Shown here: piece after piece, positions 23,632 through 63,046 of the stretch
How positions within the stretch are numbered: position 1 is the stretch's first letter
How the letters are laid out: every line of letters begins with the position of its first letter
DNA from: Macrostomum hystrix
Taxonomy: Eukaryota > Animalia > Platyhelminthes
NCBI GenBank assembly: GCA_950097015.1
Contig: CATNEN010000007.1
Coordinates: 12,338,001 to 12,402,000, forward strand
Length of the DNA: 64,000 nucleotides
Reading direction: 5' to 3'
Position numbers and translations under genes: made by a program
Notes under the pieces: model-generated
Database searches by the model: none
What the model saw: the letters and a program-made list of their open reading frames with translations, nothing else
Told to the model about the DNA's origin: nothing

Positions 23632-27802
<4,171 letters not shown>

Positions 27803-41560: not shown

Positions 41561-41596
41561 ATCCCATAGGAGAGTGACGGCCATTTTGCATTGCCC

Positions 41597-44500
41597 ATGG
41601 GATCCGCGCCATCGCAAGAGCAACGGCCGCCTGGGTCGAGTGACGCGGCTGGCGGCGGTGCCAGCAAAGACAGGGGCGGCAGGGCAGCGCCAGACGCGCA
41701 AAAGGCGAGCGCGGCGCCGACCCTGGCCTCGGAGGGCGGTGGCGCTGCCTCCACAAAGGCTGGTGGCCGCGTGGGGCCTTCGCTGATGGCGAAGCGACCG
41801 CAGCCGGAGAAGAGCCTGCTGAAGGAGCGGTTCAAGTGGAGAAAAGGTGCGAGGCTGTTGTTGAATTAGGGGGTTTATAACCCAAACACAATAAAATATA
41901 AGCCCTTGCGTTACTTGAGGATACTTGCTTTAATACTAAAAGAGCTCATTCTTCTTCATTCACAACCAAGACCCGACCGAGGTCGCCACAGTCAGCATCA
42001 GCCAGGCGGGCTTCTCCAAGACGCAGGTTAATGTCTGCGCTGGTCAGGTGAGCACATTGATTGCTCGATAGCAGTTCAATTTTCTGATATCTTTTATTTC
42101 CGCAGAAATTACAGAGGCAGAATGAAAGTTGCAGAAAACTCAAGTGGAGAATGTATAATTGATGTGTATTTTGTGGCCTCCTGGTCAAACAAAGAAACTT
42201 AGGTAGAAAGTTGCGAAACTCCGGTTAAATGGCTGGCAAGTCACATTGAGCAAGCGAGACGTTGGCGAATCTCTGTTCTCTCTGTTCGCCACGACCCGCA
42301 GTTCGTGGTGTTCGTCTGGGAGGCTGGCGAAGGCGCCGGCCAGGGCTACAACGTGACGCAGGTCGTGCACGACGGCGACCAGTTCCGGCCGGTGCCGGGC
42401 GGCATCCACTCCGGCGCGCTCTCTGCCAAGGGCAGCTTTGAGTACCAGTTCAACCTGCCTGGCGAGTACAAGTTTGTCAGCGCTGGCATCCGCTGCACCC
42501 CCCTGACTGTGACAGTTGGCGACAGGCGAGAGATCTTCGCCAAGCTGGAGGATGACGGGTTCGCGCCGCGAGTCCTGCACCTGGAGGTGGGCGAGAGCGT
42601 GAAGTGGAGCTGGACCCACTGCACCGTGCCGCACCTCGTGCAACAGGCTACCTACTGCGCGGTGCACGGCGGCCTCAAGAAGCTCGGCGTCGAGAAGTGA
42701 GCAGCCCCGAGCCAACTACTCACGGCCTCTCAAACCTGTGAAATTAGAGTCTGTACATATGCCAGCTCCAATCCCCCCAGCTATCCGCTCTGATCTACCC
42801 AGCTACCCGCTCTGATCTACCCAGCTACCCGCTCTGATCTACCCAGCTACCCGCTCTGATCTACCCAGCTATCCGCTCTCAGCGAGCCGTCAAAGCCGTC
42901 AAATGCTTGGCTCCGCTGCAGTCCTCCTTGCAGGAATGCCGTCAAGCCCTCTTCCAGCATGGCTGGCGCAGTCAAATCTCAGTGTCAGCAAACAAGGCAA
43001 ACTCTGTCTGATTTGGCATTTGGCAGGCCGCACCTTCTCTCCCTCCTCAGCCTCTCCCCAATTGTTCGATGCTCGCCAGCCGGCAGTTGGCATAATCCCG
43101 CAACTGCCGTCTCTATTGGCAACCATGGCGTGTGTCACTGGGCTGGCAAGTGTTTCACCAGCGGGCAAACATGCCTGGCTTGGTGTGTGTGGACTCGCCG
43201 GGTCGGTTGCCAGGGGCAACAGATTGGGATGCATTGGGGATCGCAGGGAGTGAGTCGACAGATGAAGGAGTAAGTGAGAGTTTGGGGCAGTGAGGCAGGC
43301 GCGGGCAGCCTGAATAATTAATATCTGCCAGGCTGCAATCGGCTTGAGCTCATCTTGAGCTCATCCTGAGCTGCGGCCCACTGCGAAGTCAGCGAGAGAG
43401 AGAGAGGGGGGAGTTTGAGTTCCACGGTCTCTGTAAAGAGCTCACTCGCACAGCAGTAGTATGCCGCGGATCTCAAGTGGCTGATTTCGGGTCCCCAGCG
43501 CTTTTGTTCTTGGCCGATTGGGTGAGTCATCCTGCATGCACTTTAAGCTGCTGGGTGGAGGTCCCTGGTCTGAAATCAGTGCTCACTAGTTCACGGCTTT
43601 CATTTCCCGGTTTTACTCCCTGTAAACAATTAATCCAGTCCATGCTACTCGTATATGTACTTTGACAGCAATGGAATTCTCCGCATTTCAGAGGCGAGAT
43701 CGCCACGCTGACAGGCAGCTACGTGCACTCCTTTAAGTAAGCAGCCCCGGACTGCCTGCCCATAGACTATTGTTAGCCACCTCAGTCCCTGATGCCATAT
43801 CGAATGTACTTTTAACCCCCGGCTCTGCGCCCCGCAGACACCCGGGCCTGTTCTACTTCATGGCCAGCGGCAACACTCCGGCTGAGTATCATCTGTGCAT
43901 TGTGCACGTGCACGACTCCTTTGGGTGAGTCCCCCATGCACTCACAGCTGTCAGGAAGCTGTCAGGAAGCTGTCAGGAAGCTGTCAGGAAGCTGCTTGGC
44001 TGAACAAGATTTGCCTGCTTAACAACTTCCTGAGCTGTCTGAGCACTGTCCGGCATGCCACTCTTCAACCTCTGTGCCTCAATTAAAGTCTTGCTTAAGC
44101 TTCCTTTCCTTTGTCCTGATCTCCTCCATATCACCTCCACTCTCACCCCACCTCTCACCTCCACTTCTCACCTCCACCACTCAGCTTCATCTCCTACCCC
44201 TGATTATAACAATAACTAAACCGAAACACTGTTCCGCCGCAGCGAGCACCGCGTAGAGATCACCGACCGCAGCTTCGAGCCGCCCATCCTGGTGATCAAC
44301 GCCGGCGACCGGGTCTGGTTTCAGTGGAGCAAGGCCGCCTGTCAGAAGAAACACAACCCATACGAGATCGCCTTGCCCGCCAGGGGCGCCCGCCGAGAGG
44401 AGTCTTTTAAGGTAACCCTACTCACTGACCCACCCAACTCACTGACCCACCCTACTCACTGACCCACCCTACTCACTGACCCACCCTACTCACTGACCCA

Positions 44501-47500
44501 CCCTACTCACTGACCCACCCAACTCACTGACCCACCCTACTCACTGACCCACCCTACTCACTGACCCACCCTACTCACTGACCCACCCTACTCACTGATC
44601 CACCCTACTCACTGATCCACCCTACTCACTGACCCACCCTACTCACTGACCCACCCTACTCACTGACCCACCCTACTCACTGACCCACCCTACTCACTGA
44701 CCCACCCTACTCACTGACCCACCCTACTCACTGACCCACCCTACTCACTGATCCACCCAACTCACTGACCCACCCTACTCACTGACCCACCCTACTCACT
44801 GACCCACCCTACTCACTGACCCACCCTACTCACTGACCCACCCTACTCACTGACCCACCCTACTCACTGACCCACCCTACTCACTGACCCACCCTACTCA
44901 ATGACCCACCCTACTCAATGACCCATCCTATACTCACTGACCCACCCTACTCACTGACCCACCCTACTCAATGACCCACCCTACTCACTGACCCACCCTA
45001 CTCACTGACCCACCCTACTCACTGACCCACCCTACTCACTGACCCACCCTACTCACTGACCCACCCTACTCACTGACCCACCCTACTCAATGACCCATCC
45101 TATACTCACTGACCCACCCTACTCACTGACCCACCCTACTCAATGACCCACCCTACTCACTGACCCACCCAACTCACTGACCCACCCTACTCACTGATTA
45201 ACCCGCAGCTGAAGAAGCAGGGCTTTCGCTGGCCGCAGCCCAGCCGCAGCGGTCTGATGGCGAACGACTTCCTGGAGCCCGGCGTGTACCACTACTCAGA
45301 CTTCAACCACCAGGAGGCCGCCGCCTACATCGGCACTATCATCGTGAAGGTAAAGCCGCAGGAGCACCGGGTCCAGCTGAACTCCGACGGCTTCACGCCA
45401 GACCTGCTGCAGCTGGCGGTGAACGAGCGGGTCTGGTGGGTCTGGGACCCCAAAGAGATGCCGCCGGCCTTCAGCATCGCTGAGGCTGGCCTGGCCCTTG
45501 CCGGCGGGGAGTCGCTCAGCTCCGGCGAGGGATGCGACGAAGGTGAGTCGTTGGAGCGGATTCCAGGGAGGGACGATGCCCCTACCTGCTAAATGAGATG
45601 CAGGGAGGTCAGAATCGAGAGATGCAGGGAGGTCAGTATTGAGAGATGCAGGGAGGTCAGAATCGAGAGATGCAGGGAGGTCAGAATCGAGAGATGCAGG
45701 GAGGTCAGAATCGAGAGATGCAGGGAGGTCAGAATCGAGAGATGCAGGGAGGTCAGAATCGAGAGATGCAGGGAGGTCAGTATCGAGAGATGCAGGGAGG
45801 TCAGAATCGAGAGATGCAGGGAGGTCAGTATTGAGAGATGCAGGAAGGTCAGAATCGAGAGATGCAGGGAGGTCAGAATCGAGAGATGCAGGGAGGTCAG
45901 AATCGAGAGATGCAGGGAGGTCAGTATCGAGAGATGCAGGGAGGTCAGAATCGAGAGATACAGGGAGGTCAGTACCGACATATGAAGGGAGGTCAGTACC
46001 GAGAGATTAAGGGAGGTCAGTACCGTGAGATTAAGGGAGGTCAATAGCGAGATATGAAGGGAGGTCAGTACCGTGAGATGCAGGGAGGTCAGTACCGAGA
46101 GATGCAGGGAGGTCAGTACAGAGAGAGAAATAGGTATTATGAAGTACAGAGAGCGATAATGTCAGTACCGAGATGTGAAGGCAACATCGACCTGCATTCT
46201 CCCCGCCAGGTCAGTGCCAGCAGTTGGACGACGCATCTCTGGAGGCTTTCGCCAGCATGGGCGCCCTGATGGTGACGCCCGCCCACGCGTCGGTGCAGCA
46301 CTTCAAGCTGAACAATGCGCCCAACAGTCTCGCCTCCTCCACCCTCATTGCGGTGCCGGGGCCTCGGGTGAGCTGACGGACTGAGGCGGGTTCAAGGTGG
46401 TGTTCAGGGATTAGCTGACGGACTGAGGCGGGTTCAAGGTGGTGTTCAGGGATTAGCTGAGGGACTGAGACGGGTTCAAGGTGGTGTTCAGGGATTAGCT
46501 GAGGGACTGAGACGGGTTCAAGGTGGTGTTCAGGGATTAGCTGAGGGACTGAGACGGGTTCAAGGTGGTGTTCAGGGATTAGCTGACGGACTGAGGCGGG
46601 TTCAAGGTGGTGTTCAGGGATTGGCTGAAGGACTGAGGCGGGTTCAAGGTGGTGTTCAGGGATTGGCTGAAGGACTGAGGCGGGTTCAAGGTGGTGTTGG
46701 GAGCTTCAGGGATGAGTTCAGGAAAGTTTTGCTTACACATTGTGGAACCCGCCCGCCGCAGAACCACACCGTCACCATCACGGAGACGGGCTTCGAGCCC
46801 AAGAAGCTGTCCGTATGCAGCGGAGACCTGGTCTGGTGGGTCTGGCAGCGCCCGGACCGCCTGCACAATGTGCTGCAGGTGTCGCCGGAGGGCCGTCCGC
46901 TGGACGACGGCTTCCAGAGTGGCGCCGTGTCGGACCCGCCCTGCGCCTTCATGCACCGCTTCGAGCGCCCGGGCCTCTATCACTTCAGCAGCGAGGGGCT
47001 TCAGGGCATCCTAGGCACCGTGGTCTGCCGCTCAGCCTGCCGGGTTCACCAGGTTCAGGTGGGCAGCACCGGACTCAGCCCCGACCCCGTGGTGGCCACC
47101 GTGAATGACCTGGTAGCCTGGGTGTTTCGCGGCCTGCGCACCCACGATGTAGTGAACATCGCCGCAATGGGCGACCTTATGGATGCGCAGCACCGATCTC
47201 AGGTGAGATGGGTCACGGGTGAGCAGGTGGTCAGCTGGTGAACTGGGTTGTGAATGCAGGTGGTCAGCTGTTGAACTGGGTTGTGAATGCAGGTGGTCAG
47301 CTGTTGAACTGGGTTGTGAATGCAGGTGGTCAGCTGGTGAACTGGGTTGTGAATGCAGGTGGTCAGCTGGTGAACTGGGTTGTGAATGCAGGTGGTCAGC
47401 TGGTGAACTGGATCCAAAAACTACCGCACCCGTCCCGCAGGGTCTGACACCGCGCCGGTGCATGGAGCGCGCCTTCGCGGAGGTCGGCACCTTCAACTTC

Positions 47501-50500
47501 ACCAGCCGCGCCTTCCTGCAGCTGGGCGCCAACAAGGAGGCCCCGATGGACGAGACTCGCATCAGCTCCGTGATCGTCTGCGAGCCGCAGGACCACACCA
47601 CCGTGCGCCTGACAGCCGGCGCCGGCTTCTTCCCGGCCGCCGTCACAGTCGTTCTGGGCGACAGCGTTCTTTGGGACTGGAGCGATGCGCCCGAGACTGA
47701 GGAGCACAACATCGTGAATGTGAACCCACCTAACAGTGCTGTGAGTACCTGCTGGCACCTGCTGGCACCTGCTGGCTCCACTCCCGAACCCTTTAGTCCC
47801 ATCGGACACTCTCTAAACTTGGCAGCCATCGCCCTCCACGCAGGCGCCTCTCAGCACCGTGAACGGCGACTTATCCTTCAACAGCGGTCGCGCCAGCCGC
47901 CGCAGCAGCTTCCTGTACACCTTCACCCGGCCCGGCATGTTCTGCGTGGCCTCCGTTGGCGCACCCGGCCGTAGCGGCTCCGTGCTGGTGCTGCCCGAGT
48001 CGGACAGGACCCCTGCGCCCAAGATAGTCTCTTTCCACGAGGGCGGCACGGTTGCCATGGGAACCGTGGTTCGGCTCGAGTGTCGCGACCCCAAAGCTGT
48101 CATTCTCTACACAATGGACGGCACGCCGCCGCTGATGCACCGACCCGGAGTGAAGGTGCGAGAGAAAATTTGAATTCAGCTTGAGGTTGCTTGAGGCGTG
48201 ACCTGAGGTTGCTTGAGGTGTGACCTGAGGTTGCTTGAGGTGTGACCTGAGGTTGCTTGAGGCGTGACCTGAGGTTGCTTGAGGTGTGACCTGAGGTTGC
48301 TTGAGGCGTGACCTGAGGTTGCTTGAGTTGGGGCTTGAGAACAAACAAAATTTTTAAGCTCAGCTCTCCACCTGTCCTACCGGTGTGCTAACAAATTTTG
48401 AGCACCATCTACATGCATCCACCGTGCTCAGGAAGTTGAGAGTCGATCCGGGACAGACTCTGATCCGCTATTTCAGATGCTGAAAGGCGAGCGGCCGCTT
48501 GCCAGCGACGATGACCCGTCGGCCAGTGTAAGGACTGGGTCAAGGCCCGCCTTCCCTCTCTTGTCACCTGGAGAACATTGCCTAGCACGCACAGTGTTTG
48601 CGAGGCCCAGCTTTTTTGGCCCTGGCCGTGTGCTGCAATTCACTGCCTTGCTCACCTGCAGAGTGCAGTTTAGCATCCGGTTTCTCATGTTTGTTTTACT
48701 CGTAATCAAACAAAACAATCTCACTTTCTTGAATTCTCACTTTCGACGTTGTCTATGGCATCTCCTTCAAGTGACAGGTTGTGCAAGGAAATTTATCCCC
48801 GTTCGCTGGCCATTCGCAGGTGTACCAGACCTGGGAGCCGCTGAAGTTGCGCAAGCTGGGCATTGTGTTCGTCAGGGCGATGGCGGTGGCGCCCAACCGA
48901 CAGCCGTCTGACATTTTCACCTCCCGGTGAGTGACATTGCGGATTAGTGAAATAAGTTCATCAGCATTTCACCCAGCATTTCACCCAGCATTTCAACCAG
49001 CATTTCACCCAGCATTGCACCCAGCATTTCACCCAGCATTTCACCCAGCATTTCACCCAGCATTTCACCCAGCATTTCACCCAGCAATTGAACCAGCATT
49101 TCAACCCATCCTTGCACCGCATTAGCCGGTTCTGGGTGGTGGACTCTGGAGCCGGAGGCGAAGAAGACGCCGAGTCCGAGGTCGAGTCCGAGGTGCCCGT
49201 GGCTGAAGCGGTCGGCAAAGTGGAGCCAGGCCCTATGGTGAGTGACAATGGGAGTGACATTCTCCTCTAGAATTATAGACAGCAAAGAGTGATAGTCTGA
49301 GTGACATTATCCATATATAATCCTATGAATATTCTAGACAGTGAAGAGTGACAATGGGTGTGACATTAGCAATGAATATCTAGACAGTATCTAGACAGTG
49401 AATGAAATCTAGACAGTGAAGAGTGACAATGGGAGGGATTCTTTATGAGAGAAATCTAGACAGTAGGGATTGAGATCAGTTGCGATTTGTCCGAGAGAAA
49501 TCTGAGCAGTACACTGACAGCCTGTGGCCCGCCTTGCCGCTGACCCTCAGAGCGAGTCCTGGAAGTGGTTCAACTGCGTGCCCTCCGTGAAGATGCTGCA
49601 CGTGGTGGACGGTACGGTGGAGATATTCTGGCAGCCGATGGCCGACGGCCTCACGGAGATGCTGGCAGGCTACCGCCTGATGCTCAACGGCGTCTCCTAC
49701 GGCGGCGTCCTGTTGCCTAGCAACAGCTGCCTGCAGGCGTCTGGCCTGGCGGCCGGCCAGATCTACAGCATCTGGCTTGAAGCCCTGCCAAGGGATGGCG
49801 TGGCCTACCAGCCTCACAAATCTAACAAACTGGTGAGCCGCTACGGCTGCAACTGGTGCAGCTGGAGATTTAATTGTTGCAGCTGGAGATTTAATTGTTG
49901 CTGCTGGAGTTTTAATTGTTGCAGATGGAGATTTAATTGATGCAGCTGGAGATTTAATTGATGCAGCTGGGGTTTTAATTGATGCAGCTGGAGTTTTAAT
50001 TGATGCAGCTGGAGATTTAATTGTTGCAGCTGGAGATTTAATTGTTGCTGCTGGAGTTTTAATTGTTGCAGATGGAGATTTAATTGTTGCAGCTGGAGAT
50101 TTAATTGATGCAGCTGGGGTTTTAATTGATGCAGCTGGAGTTTTAATTGATGCAGCTGGAGATTTAATTGTTGCTGCTGGAGTTTTAATTGTTGCAGATG
50201 GAGATTTAATTGTTGCAGCTGGAGATTTAATTGATGCAGCTGGAGTTTTAATTGTTGCAGATGGAGATTTAATTGTTGCAGCTGGAGATTTAATTGATGC
50301 AGCTGGGGTTTTAATTGTTGCAGTTGGGGTTTTAATTGTTGCAGTTGGGGTTTTAATTGTTGCAGATGGAGATTTAATTGATGCAGCTGGGGTTTTAATT
50401 GTTGCAGCTGGAGTTTTAATTGTTGCAGCTGGGGTTTTAATTGTTGCAGCTGGGGTTTTAATTGTTGCAGCTGGAGTTTTAATTGTTGCAGCTGGAGATT

Positions 50501-53500
50501 TAATTGATGCAGCTGGAGTTTTAACTGTTGCAGTTGCAACTGTTGCAGCTGGATTTCCATTATCAAATCATTACACATATGATCCGGGTTTTAATTGCGA
50601 TTTCATTTCAACTCAATCCGCTCACTTTCAACCTTCTCAGGCCTTCGAGTGTCCCCTGGCCACCTCAGTAAACGGGCCGCTGGTGTCTCTGCAGCTGAGC
50701 AGCAAGCCCAGCACCATCACTCTGGTGTGGGGGGCGCTCGCAGCCTCCGACTACTCGCTGCGGGGCTACAAGGTGACGCTGAACGGGCGGCAGTGCGGCA
50801 AGCTGGTCACGCCTGAGGCGGGCAACAAGCGCTGCAAGGTAGTCATCGAGGGCTGCACCCTCAATGCCGACTACTCGATCATTGTGTCCGCAGTCAGGGC
50901 TGATGCCTCCGGTGAGCAGGCCTCTCTCTGTTGCTTCATTATTGAGAGATTAATAAGATCAGGCTGTAGATTAAGACAAGAGAAATGAGTGGGAAAATTG
51001 CGACACGCAACTTAACAAAAAAGACGGATGAAAGGATTATTTAGATGATGCGATGATAAGTGAGGCAAGTGATGGGATTAGTGACACAGATGATGGGATT
51101 AGTGAGACAGATGATGGGATTAGTCAGACAAGTGATGAGATTAGTGAGACATGTGATGGGATTAGTGAGACATGTGAGAGTATTAGTGAGACAGATTATG
51201 GGATTAGTGAGACAGATGATGGGATTAGTGAAACATGTGATGGGATTAGTGAGACAGTTGAGACATTTCCTAAGGCTGAATCACCCCCTGGACCCCCTGG
51301 CCTCCGAACCAGGCGAGATTTCAGAGCTGCCGTCGAACAAGCTGGAGTTTCGCCTGCCTCTGAACACGGAGTCCGTGGTGCCACCAGCCGGAGCCAGCCT
51401 GCTGCAGTCCGACGAGCTGTCCGAGTTCGTCTTCGTGGCCGAGGGCGTCGGCTACCACCGAATGCCGGCGGAGCAGCTGGAGGCCATCCAGAACGCCGAC
51501 AGGCGGGCCATCGAGAAGGAGAAAGTGGCCGAAGAGGCGGGTGGCGAACCCAGCAACAGCAGCGGCAGCAGCAGCCGAAGAAGCTCCATCGCTGTGCAGA
51601 AGCCGGTCGAAGAGGCTGATGAAGGTGAGCAGTGCTCAGTCGAACTTAGCTGCTTAAAGTGGCTTCTGAGCTAACCATAAATCTTAATTTGAGCATTTTC
51701 GAAAATCACGGGCTAATCAATCATGCTGCTCGATGCCTCCTGTTTCTTAGTAACTGTTCCTCATCAACAGGCGTTTGAGAGTTTACTGAAGTTCTCGCTT
51801 CTTTTGCTATAGATTTCTGAAATCCTTTACTAACAGCACAATTGATACCCAATAACTCTATTAATTTCACTGAACCTTTGCACTCTAGTTTGGTGTGGGA
51901 ATGTTTCGCAATGCGCATTGCAGAGAACCTGCAGCAGCAGCAGCAGCAGCAGCAGCAGCCGCAGCAGCAGCAGCAGCAGATCAAGAGAGAGGCCAGGCCT
52001 TCGGATAGTGAGTTTAGTTCTGAGAGCGACTCTGAGGGTGCGAATGCCGAAACCAAAGTCAAGAAGCAGCAGCAGCAGCAGCCGACATCCCAGATTGAGG
52101 AAGTGCCGCTGATGGAGGACGCGGAATTCAACAAGCGGGAACTGCCGCCGCACGCCAGATTCAGCAGCAACAGCAGCAGCAGCGGTAGCAGCTCGCCCCG
52201 CTCATTGTCGCCCCCGCCGCCGCAAAAGAATCAGGAGAAAAAAGACAAGAAAAATAAAAGTGCGGTCGCTGCGCCGTCACTCTCGCCGTCTCCTCCGCCG
52301 CTGCCAGCCGCGGCTGTTTTGGTAAGCCAGCAGCAGCAGCAGCAGCAGCAACTGAAACATTCTTCACATGCCAAGGAAGCAGGTAAGAAAACTGTCACAA
52401 ACTGACCTTCATTTCTAGAGTTCCCGGTTACGAAATCACTAAAGCAGTAACAAATTTCTAATCCTACTAGCGCAAAATGTGTATTGCCTTCTTTGTATTT
52501 GCGTGGAGAAGCTTTTGATAAATGAATTTCATTTAGAATGTGCAGAACTGTACACATTTGTCTATGGTCCCAACGCAGTCCCGACTGAGATCCAGGTCGC
52601 GCTGGACGACGAAGCCTTCGACGTTGTGGCGACTCCAGCGTCATCGTCGGCGAGAAAGCCGCGCCCGCGCGGTGCCTCTCAGAAGCCGCCGATTTACAGG
52701 GCAGCGCACAGGAAATTCGGCGCTGCCCTGGTCACAGGTATCCCCCACATGTCCGCTCAGCACCTGCTTCACTTCAGTGCAAATTGGTTGCCTGAGGGCA
52801 CGCCTGATCCCTCAAAAGAATAAAAACTTTAGTTTATTTTGTCATCACAGTTAAGCCCTTGCTGTCACCAATGGCTTGCACCAGTGTTGTTTTAATTGAG
52901 ACTGGTTTGTGTGCAAAATGGCCCGATGAAGTGCCATATTAGTTGGTGCTTATTTTCTGAGTGAGGCGGGTGTATACATAGTGAGGTGGGTGTATACAGA
53001 GTGAGGTGGTGTATTCGGAGTAAGGTGGGTGTATACATAGTGAGGTGGGTGTATACAGAGTGAGGTGGGTGAATGCGGAGTGAGGTGGGTGTATACATAG
53101 TGAGGTGGGTGTATACAGAGTGAGGTGGGTGAATACGGAGTGAGGTGGGTGAATACGGAGTGAGGTGGGTGTATACAGATTGAGGTGGGTGTATTCGGAG
53201 TGAGGTGGGTGTAGATGGAGTGTGGTGGGTGAGTATGAAGGGAGGTGGTTAAAAAGGGATCTAGGTGGCTGAAAACTGGTTGCTTTAAGCACTAATATAA
53301 ACGATTTGTACAAATGATAGTTTTTCATGCTACAATCAAATTTTCTGTCAGTTTTTTTAGTCTACCACAAGAAATGATTAGGATCAGCCTTCCTGGATTC
53401 TGCGTCACTGTCACATTTAGTAATTAGACTCAACCATGCCTTTTAAGTCTTAAATAGTTATGCTAATTATTACTTCGCAGACACCGTGGTGGAGCTCGCA

Positions 53501-56500
53501 GATGCTGAGCCAGCGAAGGAGACCCTGGCATCCAGCGGAGCGGCTGTCGGAGTCACGGCCTTGGCGGCGGCTGCAGTTGCGCCAACGATGGAGTCGGCAA
53601 CCGCGCTGCCGGTGCCGGTGGTGCAGGTGCTGGCTGACGCGGACCACCCGGATTGGGTGCGCGTGGCCTGGGAGTTCTCTCGCCCGCTGGCGCACCAGTT
53701 CAGGCACGAGGTCAGCACTGTCAGCGTGACCGGCCGCGCCTTCTCGTCACGGGTGAACTCGGACATGAGCTTCACCTCGGAGGCGGACGGCGTGGTGCAC
53801 ACTTGGAACTGCACGGGCGGCGAGCGGGACTGCCTGTGCCGCGGTCTGGCCATCGGCTGCGACTACAGGTGCGACCCGGGATTGAAAAAGCCCTCAGATA
53901 CCTTCCCTAAAGACTGATATTCATGGAAAAGACCCCAACGAGGCCTACCCTCCGCCCGCCTCTGCGCAGGATCTTCGTAACGGCCAGCTTCTCCCAGCTG
54001 GACAGCTCCGGCGTCGGGCAGGCGGAGCTCAGCACGAAGTCGGCCGTCTGCGACTTCACCACGGCCGGACCGCCGGACCCGCCGATTCTCACCGTCCAGA
54101 GCGTGGACGTCAACCAGGTGGTGGTGGCCTGGCGGCCCGGCCGGGCCTACGGCGGCGAGGACCTGGTGGGCTATCGGCTGCTCATTGACGGCGAGCCGCA
54201 GGGCGGGCAGCTGCCTGCGCAGACTACACAGACGACACTGGAGCCGCTGCAGCCGGGCCGGACAGTGTCCGTGTCGGTGGTGGCGGTGGCCGGCCGGTCC
54301 AAGCGGGCCAGCCAGCCGTCCAACTCTGTCCGGGTCAGCTGTCCGAGACGCCCGGAGCCGCCGGAGCTGTCCGAGCAGCCGGCCAGCGCCGAGGGCGCCG
54401 TCATCGTGGCCTGGCCGGGCGAGGCGGCCACGGGGCCTCAGGAGGAGGACGTCAGCAAGTACAGGTGCACAGGGGCTCGGCAGTGGGGGCACATTTTCCC
54501 TGGGGGCAGGTTTTTCTGCGACTAAAGACATAATCGGGAAATTTCTGGAATTCCCCTTCCCTGTTACTTCGCCCTTGCAATCAAAGCTTGAAAGCCAGTT
54601 TTTCCACAATTTTCTCCATTCAGGGTGTTCGTCGACGAGAAATGGCACGGCGAGCTGAAGGCCTCCCCAGGCCGGCGCACCTACACTTATTACCTGTCCG
54701 ACCTGCAGCCCGGCGTGGTCTACGATGTGCAGGTCAAGGCGATCGCCGGTCACAAAAATGTAAGCACCGAGCATGCTACTCATAGTAGTTTGCAGTTGGA
54801 AGCTTCTGAAACATTCCCGCACTGCCGTGAAAATCAGGTGGACTCCGGCTCGGATCACGTGTTCTGCCTGTGCGAGAGCGAGCTCAGCGCCCCGCTGAGC
54901 GTCAGCTGCTCCGCCCCGCCTATCAGCCCGGCGCTGCGAGTCGAGTCCATGACGGAGGAGGGCCTGGAAGTATCCTGGTCCGTGCCGCAGCAGTTCGGCG
55001 AGGCCCAGATCTCGGTGAGTCCAAGATGCGGCCCACTTGCGGTTAAAATAACTGTTGGAAGCAAGGTGGAGTGAGGTGGCTGACTAGGAGGTGGCTGTCA
55101 AGGGAGCAAGGCGGAGTGAGGTGACTGACAGGGAGTGAGATGGCTGTCTAGGGAGTGAGGTGGCTGTCTAGGGAGTGAGGTGGCTGTCTAGGGAGTGAGG
55201 TGTCTGTCTAGGGAGTGAGGTGTCTGTCTAGGGAGTGAGGTGTATGTCTAGGGAGCGAGTGGCTGACTAGGAGGTGGCTGTCAAGGGAGCAGGGCGGAGT
55301 GAAGTGACTGACTAGGGAGTGAGGTGGCTGTCTAGAAAGTGAGGTGGCTGTCTAGAAAGTCAGGCGGCTGTCTAGGAAGCGAGGTGGCTGACAAAGGAGC
55401 GGTCAGTGATATTATCAACTGAATCGCTGGACCAGGGCTATCAAATGCTTCGCGACGGTGAGCCCTACGGCTCAGTGCTGCCTCCGGACGCCACCTCCTT
55501 CCGGCTGCGCGACCTGACGCTCGGCCAGCGGCTGACGCTGCAGTTGGTGGCGTTGACGGCTCACGCGGTGGGCCGCGGCGAGGAGTCGGCCGAGGGCGCC
55601 GTGGAGCTCGGCCAGTTCAACCGGTGCACGCCGGGCCCAGCCTTGGTGGTGAACTACACGGGCCTGGTGCTGGCGCCCGCAAGGGTCTGGTGCGATGACG
55701 TCACCGGCCACTCGGCCACCGTGGCCTGGACGAGAAGTGAGTTTGGCGATGCTGGAGCCTAAAAGTTGCTGCTGATTTTCTATATTCACGATCAAAAAGA
55801 CAAAAATAATTTTAAAGCACAGTAAAAATCATTTTGAGAGAAACGAATGATTGCTCTTTAGTTAAAACACATCGACCGGTTCAGAACCGAGGTCCTGAGC
55901 TCGAATCCGTGGCGAGGCCACACATTTGGGGCGCAGTCGCGTAGGAAGAGCTTGGGGGCTTGTCGTGCAATTTACGCCCTCTTAGAATTAAGCTTGCCAA
56001 AGCACAGTGAGAGTGCACACTGCCTGACAATGAGAAAGTCGGGGCAGATGGACACACCCTGGGTTGTTATTATTATGAGCGTAGTTTTGTTATTTTTTGC
56101 ATGCAGCGTAGCCTACTAACAAGTAGTGCCTAAAGAAAGTACTAAAACAATCAGTCTGCGGTGCCGCTAACAGTCTTCATCTTTCACTGGGCAGTTCACT
56201 TGTGTGCTTTTTGCATTTTCTAATCACTAACTTTCACAGACAAGCGATTGAGGTCTGCTAAGCCTGCCAGACGAAAGTAGACATGACTCAGGACTTGAGA
56301 TGCTCGGCCCGACCAAATATTGCTGACAACCATTACAAACAGGCACTCTGACCCGCCTGACAACAGGAACACACTCGCTGCTCTGCAAACTGTTCCAGAA
56401 GGGTTTTCACCATAGACTAGTGGCTCATTCGTGCATTCGCAAAAGAACCGTTTTGGACATGGATGAGATAAGAGAGGTCGAGATTAGAAAGTGTGAGATT

Positions 56501-59500
56501 AGATATGGTGAGATTAGATAGGGTGAGATTAGATAGGGTGAGATTAGATAGGGTGAGATTAGATAGGGTGCGATAGGGAGATAGGGAGATTAGAGAGGTG
56601 GAGATTAACGCACATTTTATCAGATAGAATTGAAATGCGATCATTGTCAATGAGCAGTTGAGCAGCGGGTTGTTCCTCCATTCTGAGCACTGAAATTTCC
56701 GTTCTGCCTATTTATGCAAGAAGTCTTGCGGACACCTTTGCGTTGCTTAGCATTTTCGCACCTCTGTCTTCCTCCGAACCCAAAGCCTTGTTTGCTAGCT
56801 CAATAAAACCATTCAATAAAAGCTGCACATTGCGGCAGCCAGGCTTCATGTCTATGGTCAAAACCGGCTGTTAAAAATAGGCACACAGAGTTGCCAGTCT
56901 CTCAGTGCTAGAGTTGCATTCTTGAGGCTGCGGGTGGGGTTGCTGGCTGGTTGCCATGGCGACTGGTGAGAGCCGCCCGCTATTCCTTTGTGCTCGAGTG
57001 CTCAGGGTGAGAATTCTCTGCGCTGTCGCACCTGCAGCTCCTGGCCAGAGACTATTTCATTGATGCTGGAGTGAGCCGGTGAGGGGGTGTAAAGGTGGCC
57101 CTCGTTAAACTGTTCATTTTTTGCACCCCCTAGAGCGAATAGCACGGGCCTTACAGCCCAAGCACAACACACACCTGTGCACTGGAGGCATTCAGATTAA
57201 TACTCGTAATACTAGCTGACAATCTGAGACTAAGTCAGGGCTGCAGAGTGCACAAGCTCAAAACTCGAGCCTTATTCTGTTTTGAGTCCTTCTGAGCAGC
57301 AAATTGGTGAGTATAAAACAGAATTTCAATGGGCCATCGTTGACATTTCACTTGACATTGCCTCCTGCTTAACTCCGTTCACATTAGCCAGTGTTTGCCA
57401 ACCACAGCAAGCTTTTCCTTAGAACCTGCTTCTGCCATTGCTTTGCCAATTGACACTTGATTGACTGCTTTGAAAGCTCTGCTACTTATTTGCTTATTAT
57501 ATACTATTTTCCTCGCGGGGAGCTTTGGTGATTGATGGTCACAGCGAGTCAGGGGTGATGGTCACTGAAGTGTAAGGTGTGACAGACACAGAAGTGTCAG
57601 GTGTGGTGTCAGGTGTGGTGGTCCCTGAAGTGTCAGGTGTGGTGGTCCCTGAAGTGTCAGGTGTGGTGGTCCCTGAAGTGTCAGGTGTGGTGGTCCCTGA
57701 AGTGTCAGGTGTGGTGGTCCCTGAAGTGTCAGGTGTGGTGGTCCCTGAAGTGTCAGGTGTGGTGGTCCCTGAAGTGTCAGGTGTGGTGGTCCCTGAAGTG
57801 TCAGATGTGGTGGTCCCTGAAGTGTCAGGTGTGGTGGTCCCTGAAGTGTCAGGTGTGGTGGTCCCTGAAGTGTCAGGTGTGGTGGTCCCTGAAGTGTCAG
57901 GTGTGGTGGTCCCTGAAGTGTCAGGTGTGGTGGTCCCTGAAGTGTCAGGTGTGGTGGTCCCTGAAGTGTCAGGTGTGGTGGTCCCTGAAGTGTCAGGTGT
58001 GGTGGTCCCTGAAGTGTCAGGTGTGGTGGTCCCTGAAGTGTCAGGTGTGGTGGTCCCTGAAAAGTATTCAACGCCAGTCCTGCGATCCCGCAGGCTCCGC
58101 CGGCAAGCTACACTTCATCCCGCCCACGCACTATCAAATCACCTGGTGGCCCGGTAGCTCGCCAGATCGCGAGGTCAACAGCGCCAGCACCCCGGAGGAC
58201 TTCGCCCTGCTCGAGGGCCTCGCCCCGGCCACAGTCTACACCGTGGTTGTCGAAGCCCGCTGCGAGCAGCGCCAGGACTCGGGAAGCACCGTCATCGTCA
58301 GCAGCCGGCCGCAGCGGCTGACCCTGCGCACCGCCGAGCCGCCGCTGCCGCCCAGCAACCTCGGCGTCGCTGCCACAACCTGCTGCAGCCTCCTTGTGGC
58401 CTGGGACCCTCCCGTTGAGCGCGGCTCGGAGGTCATCGGCATCCGGGTTGAGTGCGCGCCGACTTCCGGTGTCAGCTCTGCCAGCGGCGACTTGCAGGTG
58501 CGGTGTCCATCAGTCGCAGTCCATCAGTCCCAGTCCATCAGCCCCAGTCCATCAGTCCCAGTCCATCAGTCGCAGTCCATCAGTCCCAGTCCATCAGTCC
58601 CAGTCCATCAGTCCCAGTCCATCAGCCCCAGTCCATCAGTCCCAGTCCATCAGTCGCAGTCCACCAGTCCCAGTCCATCAGTCCCAGTCCATCAGTCCCA
58701 GTCCATCAGTCCCAGTCCATCAGTCCCAGTCCATCAGTCCCAGTCCATCAGTCCCAGTCCATCAGTCGCAGTCCACCAGTCCCAGTCCATCAGTCCCAGT
58801 CCATCAGTCCCAGTCCATCAGTCCCAGTCAATCAGTCCCAGTCCATCAGTCCCAGTCCATCAGTCCCAGTCCTGTACTTTACCCTCACCGCTCGCAGGTG
58901 CTGGAGTTGATGCCCGACGCCACCCGGGCCCTCATCGAGAACCTCAGAGAGCACACCGACTATTCTGTCCGCGTCTGCGCCGTCACCGAGGAGGCCCTGC
59001 AGTCGCTCCCGCCGCGTCATCCGGCCCGCCTGGCCCGCAAGCTGCCCGTCGATCTCGCCGAGCTGTCCGGCCTCGTGGACGTCGCCTGGATGCCTTCGGC
59101 CCACCTGCTGGCAACCACCAGCGGCACGCAGCCGCCCAGCCGCATCCGCCTGGCCAGCCTCACCGACCAGAGCGTCAAGCTGCGCTGGCAGCCGCCCTCC
59201 GTCACCGGTTCCAACCGGCTAAAGGGCCAGGTGGTGCGCTGGACTGAAGTGCCCGACGCTGGCAAGTCGGCCACCCGCTCCTCCGACTGGGACGGACCGT
59301 CAGCAGCTGACTATGTCTCGCTAGACCCTAAGGACAGCAAGGTGAGTAGGATTACAAACTCATGAGGGTATGAAATCATGCAATGGAACAGCTGACACTA
59401 GAATGGCTGACACAATAGAACAGCTGACAATATAGAACAGCTAACAATATAGAACAGCTGACAATATAGAACAGCTGACAATATAGAACAGCTGACAATA

Positions 59501-62500
59501 TAGAACAGCTGACAATATAGAACAGCTGACAATATAGAACAGCTGACAATATAGAACAGCTGGCAATATAGATCAGCTGACACTAGAACAGCTGACAATA
59601 TAGAACAGCTGACAATATAGAACAGCTGACAATATAGAACAGCTGACAATATAGAACAGCTGACAATATAGAACAGCTGACAATATAGAACAGCTGACAA
59701 TATAGAACAGCTGACAATATAGAACAGCTGACACTAGAACAGCTGACAATATAGAACAGCTGACAATATAGAACAGCTGACAATATAGAACAGCTGACAA
59801 TATAGAACAGCTGACACTAGAACAGCTGACAATATAGAACAGCTGACAATATAGAACAGCTGACAATATAGAACAGCTGACAATATAGAACAGCTGACAA
59901 TATAGAACAGCTGACAATATAGAACAGCTGACAATATAGAACAGCTGACACTAGAACAGCTGACAATATAGAACAGCTGACAATATAGAACAGCTGACAA
60001 TATAGAACAGCTGACAATATAGAACAGCTGACACTAGAACAGCTGACAATATAGAACAGCTGACAATATAGAACAGCTGACAATATAGAACAGCTGACAA
60101 TATAGAACAACTGACAATATAGAACAGCTGACAATATAGAACAGCTGACAATATAGAACAGCTGACACTAGAACAGCTGACAATATAGAACAGCTGACAA
60201 TATAGAACAGCTGACAATATAGAACAGCTGACAATATAGAACAACTGACAATATAGAACAGCTGACAATATAGAACAGCTGACAATATAGAACAGCTGAC
60301 AATATAGAACCGCTGACAATATAGAACAGCTGACAATATAGAACAGCTGACAATATAGAACAGCTGACAATATAGAACAACTGACAATATAGAACAGCTG
60401 ACAATATAGAACAGCTGACAATATAGAACAGCTGGCAATATAGATCAGCTGACAATATAGAACAGCTGACACTAGAACAGCTGACAATATAGATCAGCTG
60501 ACACTAGAACAGCTGACACTATAACAGCTGACATTTTTAAACAGAAGTCTATGCCCCGATCTCCGAGCAGGTGACTCTGGAGGGTCTTCGCCCCGGCACC
60601 AAGTACCGAGTGGTTGTGGAGGCCGTTGTCAGCGTGAAGACAGCGCTGGACCCGCAGTCGGACCGCGCCACAGCGGAGGAGGAGCAGCGCAACCGGCGCA
60701 CCGCGCACGTGTCCAGCGACCCAGTGTTTGTGCGCACCAGGTGTCACGTGACCCAGCCGCGCCTCATGGTGGCCGCGGTGCGGCCGGACTCCATCCTGCT
60801 GCACTGGGAGCGGCCCTACACACTGGCGGTCGTGCGGCTGGAGCAGGCCAGCGAGAGGCGCTACGTGCGCTGCCACATCGAGGGCTACCGCCTGGAGATC
60901 AACGGCAAGCCGTACGTCAGCCTGCGCCCGGACGCCCAGACCTGCCGGCTGGTGAAATGCCGGCCCGGCAAACTCTACAGCGTTGTGCTGGTGGCCGTCA
61001 CCCAGACTGACGCAGCCAAGAAGGAGGCCAGACGGCTGCGCAAGAGCCGCAGCTCCGAGCAGCAGCAGCAGCAGCAGATCTGCCTGTACCCGGAGGAGCC
61101 TGATGAGACCTTCAGCGAGCCTGTGGAGGTGAGCGGTGGCGACTTTTGTATGGAATTCGGATAGAAATTGTGTGCCAAACTTGGGCTAAATGACCGCCGC
61201 TTGCATCCCCGGCAGGTCCGAGTTCCCGGCGGTCAGCTGGCTGCAATCCGCGAACTGTCCGCCGAATTTCACCTGCCAGACCGAGGCGAAGCCGGCGACG
61301 GCACTGGCGTCGGCGAGGTGCGGCTTCGCTGGAGTCTGGACGACGAGTTCCAGGGCCAGGTGAAGCAGTTCAACGTCACGTGGTGCACCGACCGCGAGGG
61401 CGCCGGTAAGGCGCAGCGGCGGGTCCTGGACGCGGTGGCCACATGCGCTGCGCTGGAGTGCGGCGAGCAGGGCTGCACGGTGACTGCCAGGCTGGAGTGC
61501 GTGCTGACCCGAGAGACCCGCGAGCCAATCGAGATGCAGGTCCAGCTGACCACGCCGGGCCCGCCGTCGACGCCGCAGATCTTCCTGGACGCCCTGTCAG
61601 ACAAGGAGATTCTCATCGAATGGTCGGAGCCGCCCCTGACAGGCGGGGTGGGCGTGGCTGGCTACCAGCTGATCGTGAACGGCAAGAAGGCCGGCGACCC
61701 GCTGGAGCCGACCCACCGGCGCGCGGTGATCCCCTGCCGGCCCAACCGGCACTACCGGGTGCAGCTGGTGGCGCTGTCCGCACACCGCGACTTCCCCGAC
61801 TCCCCGGCCTCCAAGCCGCTGTTCGTCAGCACCCACCCCAACATGCCGGCGGCGTCCGAGGCGCCGCCGCCCGACTTTGTCGATGCCGACGCCCCCGATG
61901 AAGCAGCCGGCGCCGGTGACCAGTCGGAGATACCGTTAAGCGTCAGCGCCCGCACCGACATGACCCTGACGGTGGAGTGGATGGCCTACCAGCCGCCTGA
62001 CGGGGTCCACAGCTTCGCCCTGCAGTGGTCCAGTCCCGCACAGCCGGCTGAGCGCACGGAGACGCTGGCGCATCAAGAGCGCTCCTGTCTGCTGCAGAAC
62101 CTGCTGCCAGGCACCGTGTACTCCCTGCGCCTCAGCTCACTTGACTCCGGCCGCGCCGTGGTGGAGAAAAGCCGCGCCCTTCGTGTCCAGACCTGCGCGC
62201 CTATCGACACCCCCGTGCTGAACCTGCGGGCCTGCAACTTCTCCTACATCGCAGTGAACTGGAACACCCCGAAGCACTACGGCGACGCGCCGGTGGCCGG
62301 CTACAAGGTCTTCATCAACGGCGTCGTGGAGGAGACCCTGGGAGCCGGCGAGACCAGCTTCACCTACTGCAAAGGCCGCTGGTGCCAGGACTACAGCTTC
62401 CAGGTACTCAGCAGCACTCTTGATCCCCAAACTGTACTCAGAAATCCCACTGGATCATTAATTTGAGCATAACCAAATCGCACACTGCCAGGTGCAAGCT

Positions 62501-63046
62501 GTGAGCAGCAACCCGCGCTTCAACAGCAAACCCAGCGACAGCCTGCTGGTCACGTGGCCTGGCTGCCTGCCCGGCGAGCTGCGGCCGCTGGTGGCCACCG
62601 TCAGCGGCGCCGCCAGGGTCGGCTGGCAGGCGCCCTACCTGACGGAGGGCGTCAAGTTGAAGCAGTTCCGGCTGATCTGCAAGCTGGCGGACACCGGCCA
62701 GGTGGTGCGGGTGGTCGGGCCGCTGCACCCGGAGACGCGGGAGGCGGAGGTGACTGGCCTGCGGTCCGGCACCTACCACCTGCAGCTGGAGGTGCAGCTG
62801 CACGGCACCCAGATGGCGGTGCTGTCCGCGGCCTTGACAGTGCAGCCGACGCTGACGCCGGACCCGCCGACAGTGTCGGTGACGGTGGTCGGCCTGGAGC
62901 AGCGCAGGCAGCTGGAGGCAGCGGTCTGCCGGCTGGTGAACAAGCGGGACAGGCATGTGCGGCTGATCCACAACATCCACATGCTGCCCACCAAGACGCT
63001 GGAGGAGACCCAGCTGCTGGCCCGCTTCACCGAGGCATACAACCAG
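41597..63046 (+). CDS. Giant uncharacterised cupredoxin-like repeat + Fn3-associated + fibronectin type III repeat protein (at least 2972 aa, 3'-incomplete)
   Basis: 28 phase-consistent GT-AG exons: 41597-41846, 41971-42047, 42302-42696, 43692-43736, 43838-43924, 44243-44411, 45209-45542, 46210-46367, 46762-47202, 47441-47740, 47844-48155, 48820-48926, 49126-49237, 49551-49832, 50641-50911, 51313-51624, 51924-52382, 52579-52737, 53481-53868, 53970-54464, 54624-54759, 54838-55014, 55436-55736, 58094-58497, 58898-59341, 60571-61128, 61216-62403, 62492-63046. Total 8916 nt with no stop. Confidence 0.88.
42778..42878. repeat. 23-bp minisatellite (cagctacccgctctgatctaccc) x4
   Basis: Intron 3 of the giant gene. 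Confidence 0.9.
43947..43994. repeat. 11-bp repeat (gctgtcaggaa) x4
   Basis: Intron 5. Confidence 0.85.
44416..45197. repeat. 17-bp minisatellite (cctactcactgacccac)
   Basis: About 45 copies filling almost all of intron 6. Confidence 0.96.
45595..46120. repeat. 24-bp minisatellite (gagatgcagggaggtcagaatcga)
   Basis: About 21 copies, intron 7. Confidence 0.95.
46371..46698. repeat. 42-bp minisatellite (agctgacggactgaggcgggttcaaggtggtgttcagggatt)
   Basis: About 8 copies starting at +4 of the intron 8 donor. Confidence 0.95.
47223..47411. repeat. 33-bp minisatellite (gcaggtggtcagctggtgaactgggttgtgaat)
   Basis: About 5.7 copies, intron 9. Confidence 0.93.
48181..48327. repeat. 22-bp minisatellite (gtgacctgaggttgcttgaggY)
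   Basis: About 6.5 copies, intron 11. Confidence 0.93.
48962..49108. repeat. 12-bp minisatellite (cagcatttcacc)
   Basis: About 12 copies, intron 12. Confidence 0.93.
49855..50552. repeat. 21-bp minisatellite (gcagctggagatttaattgWt)
   Basis: About 33 copies, intron 14. Confidence 0.95.
51060..51257. repeat. 21-bp minisatellite (gatgggattagtgagacagat)
   Basis: About 9 copies, intron 15. Confidence 0.9.
52959..53235. repeat. 20-bp minisatellite (gtgaggtgggtgtatacaga)
   Basis: About 14 copies, intron 18. Confidence 0.92.
55068..55395. repeat. 20-bp minisatellite (gggagtgaggtggctgtcta)
   Basis: Degenerate array, intron 22. Confidence 0.88.
55845..56077 (+). mobile_element. Possible degenerate tRNA-derived SINE
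   Basis: B-box-like ggtcctgagctcgaatcc at about 55891-55908 in a tRNA-like context, then a ~150-nt body and a ttgttattattat tail. Confidence 0.35.
56478..56600. repeat. 15-bp minisatellite (gggtgagattagata)
   Basis: About 7 copies, intron 23. Confidence 0.85.
57590..58060. repeat. 24-bp minisatellite (gtgtggtggtccctgaagtgtcag)
   Basis: About 19 near-identical copies, intron 23. Confidence 0.96.
58505..58872. repeat. 14-bp minisatellite (cagtccatcagtcc)
   Basis: About 26 copies filling intron 24. Confidence 0.95.
59386..60533. repeat. 17-bp minisatellite (gaacagctgacaatata) with 15-bp variants
   Basis: About 68 copies filling intron 25. Confidence 0.97.

Follow-up and report, generated by a model that had tools for sequence, protein, structure and literature searches.

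A Macrostomum hystrix gene with seven cupredoxin repeats that lack copper ligands: candidate member of an unstudied giant animal protein family

We analysed a window of 64,000 nucleotides from the flatworm Macrostomum hystrix (G000:C7:12338001-12402000, + strand) and followed up a sequence-only reading that had placed a giant multidomain gene in its second half. The gene starts at position 41597 and continues beyond the window end. Its product comprises, in this order, a Met-Gly-x3-Ser start with a disordered leader, seven cupredoxins, a CHB_HEX_C/Fn3_assoc domain, two FN3 domains, an acidic Gln-rich spacer, thirteen further FN3 domains, a helical segment, another FN3 domain, a thioredoxin fold with a CxxS active site and an RPYS tail. 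On balance, we regard the gene as the orthologue of an unstudied, single-copy family of giant animal proteins, with a product that is probably a cytoplasmic, N-myristoylated tether or scaffold anchored to a membrane.

A 35-exon gene that extends beyond the window

From 41.6 kb to the window end, the + strand carries strongly coding-biased open frames in consecutive order. A first model was chained from the ATG at 41597 by dynamic programming on coding scores and splice sites with a medium intron penalty, and gave 28 exons within the window. Junctions were then refined with a Macrostomum lignano protein, the Ptychodera orthologue and the orthologue consensus, resulting in 29 exons and 2,836 codons in the window. 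The sequence-only reading had counted 28 exons and at least 2972 amino acids; its exon number agrees with the first model. Its last donor, 63046, was recovered.

Examination of 30 kb downstream revealed six further exons and a stop codon at 70549-70551, about 6.5 kb beyond the window end (coordinates past 64000 are window-equivalent). The whole model thus comprises 35 exons, 9,714 nucleotides and 3,237 codons, in frame and with no internal stop. Exons have a guanine plus cytosine (GC) content of 0.67 versus 0.49 in introns. Exon-by-exon identity to the partial M. lignano protein was 68-92% (81-92% in most domain exons, 68-76% in three). By tblastn, residues 65-3481 of the Ptychodera protein are collinear with the locus from 42299 to window-equivalent 67585, in agreement with the single gene proposed earlier. 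The gene is single-copy in the M. hystrix genome, and all searches with it were run exon by exon. Outside the folded domains, the model contains the following parts:

41597-41846, + strand: exon 1 with the start codon, MGSAPS and a disordered Ala/Gly/Ser-rich leader (dynamic programming and refinement)
49126-49237, + strand: short acidic linker exon (M. lignano protein support)
51325-52671, + strand: disordered acidic, Gln- and Ser-rich spacer (boundaries from the dynamic-programming model alone)
51325-51540, 51924-52007, 52059-52184 and 52579-52671, + strand: candidate exons of the spacer
69243-69339 (window-equivalent), + strand: exon before the terminal exon
70401-70551 (window-equivalent), + strand: terminal exon with tail and stop

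Within the spacer, the M. lignano protein supports 51390-51629 as coding, and orthologues have a long low-complexity acidic region at the equivalent place. The final exon ends as a basic, Ser-rich tail, whose RPYS motif is conserved in the orthologue alignment.

Seven cupredoxin repeats without copper ligands

The N-terminal end of the protein consists of seven tandem plastocyanin-type cupredoxin repeats, six of which are split by introns. Because of this splitting, Pfam searches with single exons returned no cupredoxin match, even at E up to 10. We employed a repeat profile instead, made from the complete repeat 5 (46762-47034) aligned with eleven exon fragments of the other repeats. Compared with the PDB, it matched plastocyanin over the whole domain (1m9w, E=1.9e-7), followed by amicyanin, pseudoazurin and nitrite reductase. 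An AlphaFold2 model of repeat 5, with the repeat alignment as input, reached a predicted local distance difference test score (pLDDT) of 87. Its top Foldseek matches in the PDB were all cupredoxins, namely pseudoazurin, plastocyanin and amicyanin, with template modelling scores (TM) of 0.60-0.81. Profile and predicted structure therefore both support the seven cupredoxin-like repeats that had been proposed from the letters:

41971-42523, + strand: repeat 1 (exon 41971-42047 and first part of 42302-42696; YNV at the first-His position; loop PGEYKFVSAGIRCTPLT)
42524-43924, + strand: repeat 2 (rest of 42302-42696, exons 43692-43736 and 43838-43924; first-His motif HLV; loop PGLFYFMASG)
44243-45361, + strand: repeat 3 (exon 44243-44411 and first part of 45209-45542; first-His motif HNP; loop PGVYHYSDFNHQ)
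45362-46367, + strand: repeat 4, the most divergent, with no first His (rest of 45209-45542 and 46210-46367)
46762-47034, + strand: repeat 5, the sole repeat complete in one exon (first-His motif HNV; loop PGLYHFSSEGLQGILG)
47035-47587, + strand: repeat 6 (rest of 46762-47229 and first part of 47441-47740; first-His motif HDV; loop VGTFNFTSRAF)
47588-48002, + strand: repeat 7 (rest of 47441-47740 and first part of 47844-48155; first-His motif HNI; loop PGMFCVASVG)

The 45-nucleotide exon of repeat 2 (43692-43736) is supported by M. lignano and the junction 47229/47441 of repeat 6 by the Ptychodera alignment. In the database protein of M. lignano (A0A1I8IHZ5) an equivalent of 47152-47521, that is, half of repeat 6, is missing, while the Ptychodera alignment supports the longer form; the gap is either a misprediction or an alternative splice form.

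Alignment of the repeats to plastocyanin revealed that none of the seven retains the Cys, second His or Met ligand, and that the first His is kept in repeats 2, 3, 5, 6 and 7. In repeat 5, for example, Ser stands in place of the ligand Cys, Leu in place of the second His and Ile in place of the Met. This agrees with the sequence-only reading, which had seen no copper loop in any repeat and a first His in several. The same pattern extends to the orthologues: hmmsearch detected 229 repeats in 35 orthologue models, with the first His in 150 of them and the Cys-His-Met loop in none of the 203 whose loop was aligned. The other 135 profile hits are for the most part tandem cupredoxins of prokaryotes, and in these hits 234 of 326 loops (72%) contained the Cys-His-Met pattern. 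The domains are homologous to blue copper proteins yet have lost the copper ligands, and were thus repurposed, as the earlier term 'repurposed redox domains' had suggested. The array is also the best-conserved part of the protein (36-52% identity between phyla over 900 amino acids).

For the arrangement of the repeats we turned to an N-terminal fragment of the Diadema orthologue (616 amino acids, six repeats), which was modelled with a pLDDT of 80 and a predicted TM-score (pTM) of 0.76. Here, the equivalent of repeat 4 is a beta domain with an inserted helix. A compact, ceruloplasmin-like packing was rejected, as the similarity of the six-domain model to factor VIII, ceruloplasmin and multicopper oxidases was confined to individual domains (TM 0.12-0.14, root mean square deviation (rmsd) about 27 Å). 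Since the packing of these oxidases was not reproduced, the model makes an array of beads on a string more likely.

Two further observations concern single repeats. Repeat 3 of hemichordates and some echinoderms (sea star, sea urchin) keeps a Cys at the ligand position (YYCD...), a feature absent in Macrostomum. A second M. hystrix locus on contig 11 (G000:C11:5215627-5215980, - strand) encodes a single similar domain that is 51% identical to the exon of repeats 1 and 2. Its likely M. lignano counterparts are proteins annotated as 'REJ domain-containing' or 'Ig-like domain-containing', which match the repeat profile and no Pfam family.

A CHB_HEX_C domain and sixteen FN3 domains

The cupredoxin array is followed by a beta-sandwich of the CHB_HEX_C_1/Fn3_assoc type. 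Pfam PF13290 matched exon 47844-48155 above the cut-off (E=4.3e-6, 27 bits versus a cut-off of 22 bits), which confirms the Fn3-associated domain named in the sequence-only reading. CHB_HEX_C occupies the equivalent position in the Ptychodera, Anneissia, Intoshia, Strongylocentrotus and Didymoeca proteins.

Exon translations, read together with the orthologue alignment, gave a count of 16 FN3 domains. Two precede the spacer, thirteen follow it inside the window and one lies past the window end. Pfam fn3 matched most of the exons after CHB_HEX_C. The 15 domains inside the window equal the earlier estimate of about 15. A conserved helical stretch (about 62900-63046 and the next exon), a candidate for dimerisation, separates FN3-15 from FN3-16.

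48003-48926, + strand: CHB_HEX_C_1/Fn3_assoc-type beta-sandwich (end of exon 47844-48155 and exon 48820-48926)
49551-49832 and 50641-50911, + strand: FN3 1 and 2 (Pfam fn3 E=0.008 on the second exon; collinear tblastn with M. lignano and Ptychodera)
53481-53868, 53970-54458, 54624-54759, 54838-55014 and 55436-55736, + strand: FN3 3 to 6 and the start of 7 (Pfam fn3 E=3e-8, 6e-5 and 0.014; collinear with Ptychodera residues 1737-2151; acceptor 55436 picked from the orthologue consensus)
58094-58497 and 58898-59345, + strand: FN3 7 to 9 (Pfam fn3 E=1e-10 and 2e-8; Ptychodera residues 2173-2429)
60548-61147 and 61280-62403, + strand: end of FN3 9 to start of 14 (Pfam fn3 E=1.5e-8 and 5.8e-17, three stretches; Ptychodera residues 2453-3062)
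62492-63046, + strand: last window exon with the end of FN3-14, FN3-15 and the start of the conserved helical segment (Pfam, tblastn)
64691-65031 (window-equivalent), + strand: FN3-16

A thioredoxin-like domain with a single active-site cysteine

Beyond the window, an alignment with six orthologues identified the last folded domain:

67234-67634, 68761-68835 and 68919-69059 (window-equivalent), + strand: thioredoxin-like domain

Exon 67234-67634 reads FWTRWCVAS, and later exons contain GVPF, the cis-Pro loop, and AWRGR. The C-terminal features of the family (FWTxWCxxS, GVP[TF], then the RPYS tail) are thus all found in the exons beyond the window. When a profile of this region, built with the six orthologues, was compared with the PDB, all hits above rank 37 belonged to the thioredoxin superfamily; StoA ranked best (3erw, E=3e-5), followed by the thioredoxin domain of Grx3, thioredoxins m and f, and ResA. 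Pfam Thioredoxin_8 gave E=0.012 on exon 67234-67634 and 8e-4 on the sea urchin protein.

The active site is of the CxxS type (WCVAS), without the second Cys of CxxC. CxxS is shared by the ten metazoan orthologues in which this site could be matched. By lineage, the motif changes stepwise: the choanoflagellate has WCTPC, the glass sponge WCKSS and most animals WC-x-x-S/A. Choanoflagellate CxxC versus animal CxxS would place one step of the loss of redox chemistry in time. Thioredoxin domains of hemichordates and echinoderms carry Cys/His-rich inserts (CCC ... HCCSCH), which are absent in Macrostomum. The inserts, like the Cys of repeat 3, may mark a metal or palmitoylation site.

A family from choanoflagellates to echinoderms

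To place the gene among its relatives, we ran an exhaustive profile search with the repeat alignment, which returned 2,508 proteins at E up to 1e-3. The top hits formed two groups, giant animal orthologues and prokaryotic tandem cupredoxins. Orthologues with seven hits each came from M. lignano (partial), Ptychodera, Patella, Elysia, Anneissia, Argonauta, Bulinus, Diadema, Intoshia, the glass sponge Oopsacas and, as a fragment, Sycon. A word search with Ptychodera residues 1-900 added full-length models of 3,200-4,000 amino acids, both ambulacrarian (Glandiceps, Acanthaster, Asterias, Lytechinus, Strongylocentrotus (LOC577931) and Antedon) and other (Owenia, Lineus, Haliotis, Gigantopelta, Mya, Capitella, Babylonia, Pomacea, Plakobranchus, Dimorphilus, Ostrea and Physella). 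The family therefore includes hemichordates, echinoderms, molluscs, annelids, a nemertean, an orthonectid and sponges, and more than 20 species encode the protein as a full-length single open reading frame (ORF) with equal domain order. Among the matches listed, there was no member from vertebrates, tunicates, cephalochordates, arthropods, nematodes, cnidarians, ctenophores or placozoans.

The choanoflagellate Didymoeca costata encodes a homologue of 1,646 amino acids with a WW domain, cupredoxin-like repeats, CHB_HEX_C/Fn3_assoc and a thioredoxin domain with WCTPC. A homologue of the family hence predates animals. With relatives from sponges to echinoderms and in a choanoflagellate, the gene is no oddity of this animal.

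Nearly all orthologues are named 'uncharacterized' or 'hypothetical' (one Plakobranchus model is called 'fibronectin, partial'), and Pfam already marks Copper-bind or Cupredoxin_1 on several of them. Database and literature searches found no characterised protein of equal architecture, in accordance with the earlier statement that no such animal protein was recognised, and the literature searches found no paper that names or describes the family. Two other queries gave less. A word-index search with the exon of repeats 5 and 6 had no match, and as it covered only proteins of 86-273 amino acids it is uninformative on relatives. In a search for relatives without cupredoxins, the C-terminal FN3 and thioredoxin region of Ptychodera retrieved nothing but orthologues from Ambulacraria and titin-like kinases with generic FN3 similarity.

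Horizontal transfer of a bacterial cassette of cupredoxin array plus CHB_HEX_C was also considered. This was not supported, as none of eight prokaryotic tandem cupredoxin proteins contained CHB_HEX_C.

A conserved myristoylation-type N-terminus

The product begins with MGSAPS, that is, Met1-Gly2, a small uncharged residue 3 and Ser6, which is the N-myristoylation consensus. This start had been read at 41597 before, and the motif is conserved in orthologues: an alignment of 17 of them shows no variation at M1, G2 and S6, and 24 of 35 orthologue models start with MGxGxS or a close variant such as MGSAPS. The complete transcript ORF of Didymoeca starts with MGSGSS. In the Diadema model, the first 41 residues have a pLDDT below 50 and are thus disordered.

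We analysed whether coding sequence could precede this start. Direct reading showed one acceptor-like site nearby upstream, followed by an in-frame stop:

41535-41569, + strand: acceptor-like site TTTTGCAG (41535-41542), then in-frame TAG (41567-41569)

No ATG lies between this site and 41597. An upstream coding exon spliced at TTTTGCAG would therefore hit the stop, and the ATG at 41597 is the first possible start in the exon. A Kyte-Doolittle scan found no signal peptide or membrane helix in any exon, as stated in the sequence-only reading; the top 19-residue mean (1.75) belongs to an Ala-rich low-complexity stretch. The conserved Met-Gly start and the lack of a signal peptide or helix favour a cytoplasmic, membrane-tethered protein. 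WW domains are cytoplasmic modules, and the one in the choanoflagellate homologue points the same way, so that the 'membrane-tethered intracellular' protein suggested earlier gains support. Judged from sequence, Gly2 would be N-myristoylated and the N-terminus would lie on the cytoplasmic membrane face.

In the orthologues, residues 3-5 read [STANC]-G-[ACV], each of them small; M. hystrix has S-A-P. Small or medium residues at positions 3, 4 and 5 after a myristoylated Gly define high-affinity cargo of UNC119, which ARL3 releases at cilia or the immune synapse (PMC8246649). These residues may be taken as a lead towards cilia, the sole one we have; the rule is also met by non-ciliary proteins.

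Proposed role and competing readings

How might such a protein work? We propose that the myristoylated N-terminus would hold it on the cytoplasmic face of a membrane. Next to the membrane, the copper-less cupredoxin array would probably form a protein-binding platform, as in ephrins. Spacer and FN3 string may act as a long flexible arm. At its far end, the single-Cys thioredoxin head would probably hold or sense a partner via a mixed disulfide or redox-dependent binding; turnover as an oxidoreductase is unlikely.

Several points weigh against this proposal. About one third of the database orthologue models start otherwise, probably as they are truncated or mispredicted, and position 5 is Pro in Macrostomum versus Ala, Cys or Val in nearly all other models with an MG start. 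The active-site Cys is lost in Dimorphilus and Intoshia, so a thiol-based role cannot be universal. The cytoplasmic location is predicted from sequence motifs, and CHB_HEX_C/Fn3_assoc, FN3 and cupredoxin domains come mostly from extracellular or periplasmic proteins. The arm would measure roughly 100 nm by arithmetic (24 domains of about 4 nm each), not by measurement. Finally, four exons of the disordered spacer (51.3-52.7 kb) have uncertain boundaries and are the weakest part of the model.

The typical location of these domains is also what an extracellular reading builds on, in which the gene encodes a secreted or cell-surface adhesion or matrix protein that is exported through an unseen upstream signal-peptide exon or by an unconventional route, with a beta-sandwich string acting extracellularly like that of bacterial surface proteins. 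Prokaryotic tandem cupredoxin hits even include surface proteins sorted by the type IX secretion system (T9SS). However, the in-frame stop between the sole nearby acceptor-like site and the ATG, the Met-Gly start in independent models of more than 20 species and in the complete choanoflagellate transcript ORF, and the lack of a hydrophobic leader or membrane helix in every exon all conflict with export. So does the WW domain of the choanoflagellate homologue, and the many unpaired cysteines and the poly-Gln/acidic spacer better fit the cytoplasm. We therefore consider an extracellular protein unlikely.

The sequence-only reading had spoken of a 'filament' that is 'ciliary or cortical' and 'titin-like'. 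These words remain guesses. Neither a kinase nor an Ig or cytoskeleton-binding module turned up. An elastic or ruler filament of the cytoskeleton, of the titin, twitchin or obscurin kind and located in muscle or another contractile structure, not at a membrane, would agree with the long FN3 string, the disordered spring-like spacer, the giant size and weak matches of the C-terminal FN3 region to titin-like kinases of flatworms in a word-based search. Yet these matches extend over no more than 6-20% of the query and are explained by generic FN3 similarity, and Pfam detected no immunoglobulin (Ig, I-set), kinase or other sarcomere-binding module in the exons and three full-length orthologues. 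Moreover, the family occurs in a choanoflagellate and in sponges, organisms without muscle, and the conserved lipid-anchor motif indicates a membrane. Such a filament is quite unlikely.

Could the protein instead still work in redox or metal chemistry, with non-canonical metal ligands in the cupredoxins and an electron-passing thioredoxin as parts of a membrane-bound chain? The first His (HN motif) in five of the seven repeats, the retained nucleophilic Cys and cis-Pro loop of the thioredoxin domain, and the ambulacrarian Cys at the ligand position of repeat 3 with the Cys/His-rich thioredoxin inserts would be in line with this. But a single His is insufficient for a type-1 site, and the Cys-His-Met loop occurs in no repeat of the 35 orthologue models, as opposed to 72% of loops in the other hits. 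In addition, animals have Ser or Ala in place of the resolving Cys, two lineages lack the first Cys as well, and the Cys-rich inserts are absent from Macrostomum. We regard this reading as very unlikely.

Two adjacent genes merged in the model (one for the N-terminal cupredoxins, one for the C-terminal FN3/thioredoxin part) or a decaying pseudogene, to which the end of the M. lignano database protein inside the spacer (at 1,269 amino acids) and the poorly defined exons at 51.3-52.7 kb might point, are highly improbable in view of the full-length ORFs of 3,200-4,000 amino acids with equal domain order in more than 20 species, the collinearity with full-length orthologues across the spacer, the 35-exon model without stop or frameshift, the GC difference between exons and introns (0.67 versus 0.49) and the identity to M. 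lignano (81-92% in most domain exons, 68-76% in three).

Beyond the membrane-anchored tether or scaffold that we favour, a more specific and rather doubtful scenario can be drawn. In this scenario the family would belong to the membrane region of flagella or cilia, or to the collar-cell apparatus, and would have existed before choanoflagellates and animals diverged. UNC119 and ARL3 would deliver the protein by way of its conserved Myr-Gly start with small residues, the cupredoxins would dock under the membrane, and the 100-nm arm would carry the redox-sensing single-Cys head.

Each module of the protein is a known fold; it is the combination that we did not find described. The family is widespread, is already present in databases with automatic domain labels and is more general than the sequence-only reading had assumed. 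Its function can be tested directly, since Macrostomum is open to RNA interference, in situ hybridisation and transgenesis, and sea urchins are open to antibodies and morpholinos.

Other features of the locus

Many introns of the gene (41000-64000) contain minisatellites of their own, with a repeat unit of 12-60 bases and as many as 69 copies. About 16 distinct arrays were found within 23 kb, for example at 44415-45197, 45595-46116, 49857-50533, 57606-58061 and 59386-60533. Outside the gene, three long ORFs of the window were noted, the latter two of which may be exons of other genes:

32762-33763, - strand: stomatin-type ORF of 334 uninterrupted codons, apparently intronless, about 8 kb upstream of the gene (Pfam Band_7 E=3e-39)
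2916-3689, + strand: long ORF without Pfam match
27125-27802, + strand: long Pro/Gln-rich ORF without Pfam match

Comparison with known systems

The closest relatives are the database orthologues, among them Ptychodera flava XP_070557721 (3,697 amino acids), Strongylocentrotus purpuratus LOC577931 (3,882 amino acids), Anneissia japonica LOC117115100, Capitella CAPTEDRAFT_219540, Oopsacas minuta KAI6653272 and the partial Macrostomum lignano A0A1I8IHZ5. They share the module order from the Met-Gly start to the thioredoxin-like end and RPYS tail, are collinear, and have seven repeats without copper ligands. Differences concern the variable length of the spacer, the Cys/His-rich thioredoxin inserts of Ambulacraria and the Pro at position 5 in Macrostomum. 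As these orthologues have neither a name nor a known function, family membership says nothing on function.

With plastocyanin, amicyanin and pseudoazurin (PF00127/PF13473), the repeats share full-length profile homology (E=1.9e-7), the fold (TM up to 0.81) and, in part, the HN motif. Unlike these proteins, the M. hystrix repeats lack the Cys, second His and Met ligands and an export signal, and seven of them follow each other in a protein that is predicted to be cytoplasmic. Prokaryotic tandem cupredoxins (metagenomic 'plastocyanin' or 'halocyanin-like' proteins with 5-12 repeats), the next-best profile hits, also have plastocyanin-type domains in a row. However, most of their repeats contain a Y[YF]CxPHxxxGMxG copper loop, and the eight that we scanned have no CHB_HEX_C, FN3 string or thioredoxin end.

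Ceruloplasmin and factors V/VIII, animal proteins with six cupredoxins, resemble the array in having several such domains per protein and were the top Foldseek hits of the six-domain model by E-value. They differ in their compact three-fold packing (global TM 0.12-0.14 and rmsd about 27 Å to the Diadema model) and in being secreted. Titin, twitchin and obscurin mix Ig (I-set) with FN3 domains and have a kinase or sarcomere-binding module, whereas the M. hystrix exons contain FN3-type domains only.

At the other end of the protein, thioredoxin-fold proteins of the TlpA/ResA/StoA type, including monothiol CxxS forms, match the profile, with FWxxWC and the cis-Pro loop in register. The animal domain differs by Ser or Ala in place of the second Cys and by a long variable insert, and in the predicted protein it would end an arm of 3,000 amino acids.

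The nearest parallel for the loss of copper is the receptor-binding domain of ephrins, an animal cupredoxin fold without copper that turned into a membrane-attached protein-binding module (PMC6485061). The survey of animal cupredoxins left multidomain cupredoxin proteins aside (PMC6485061). In contrast to the M. hystrix array, ephrins are single-domain, extracellular, disulfide-bonded and anchored by glycosylphosphatidylinositol (GPI) or a helix, and we saw no specific sequence relationship between the two. The cupredoxin array would be a second independent case, after ephrins, in which animals repurposed an electron-transfer fold.

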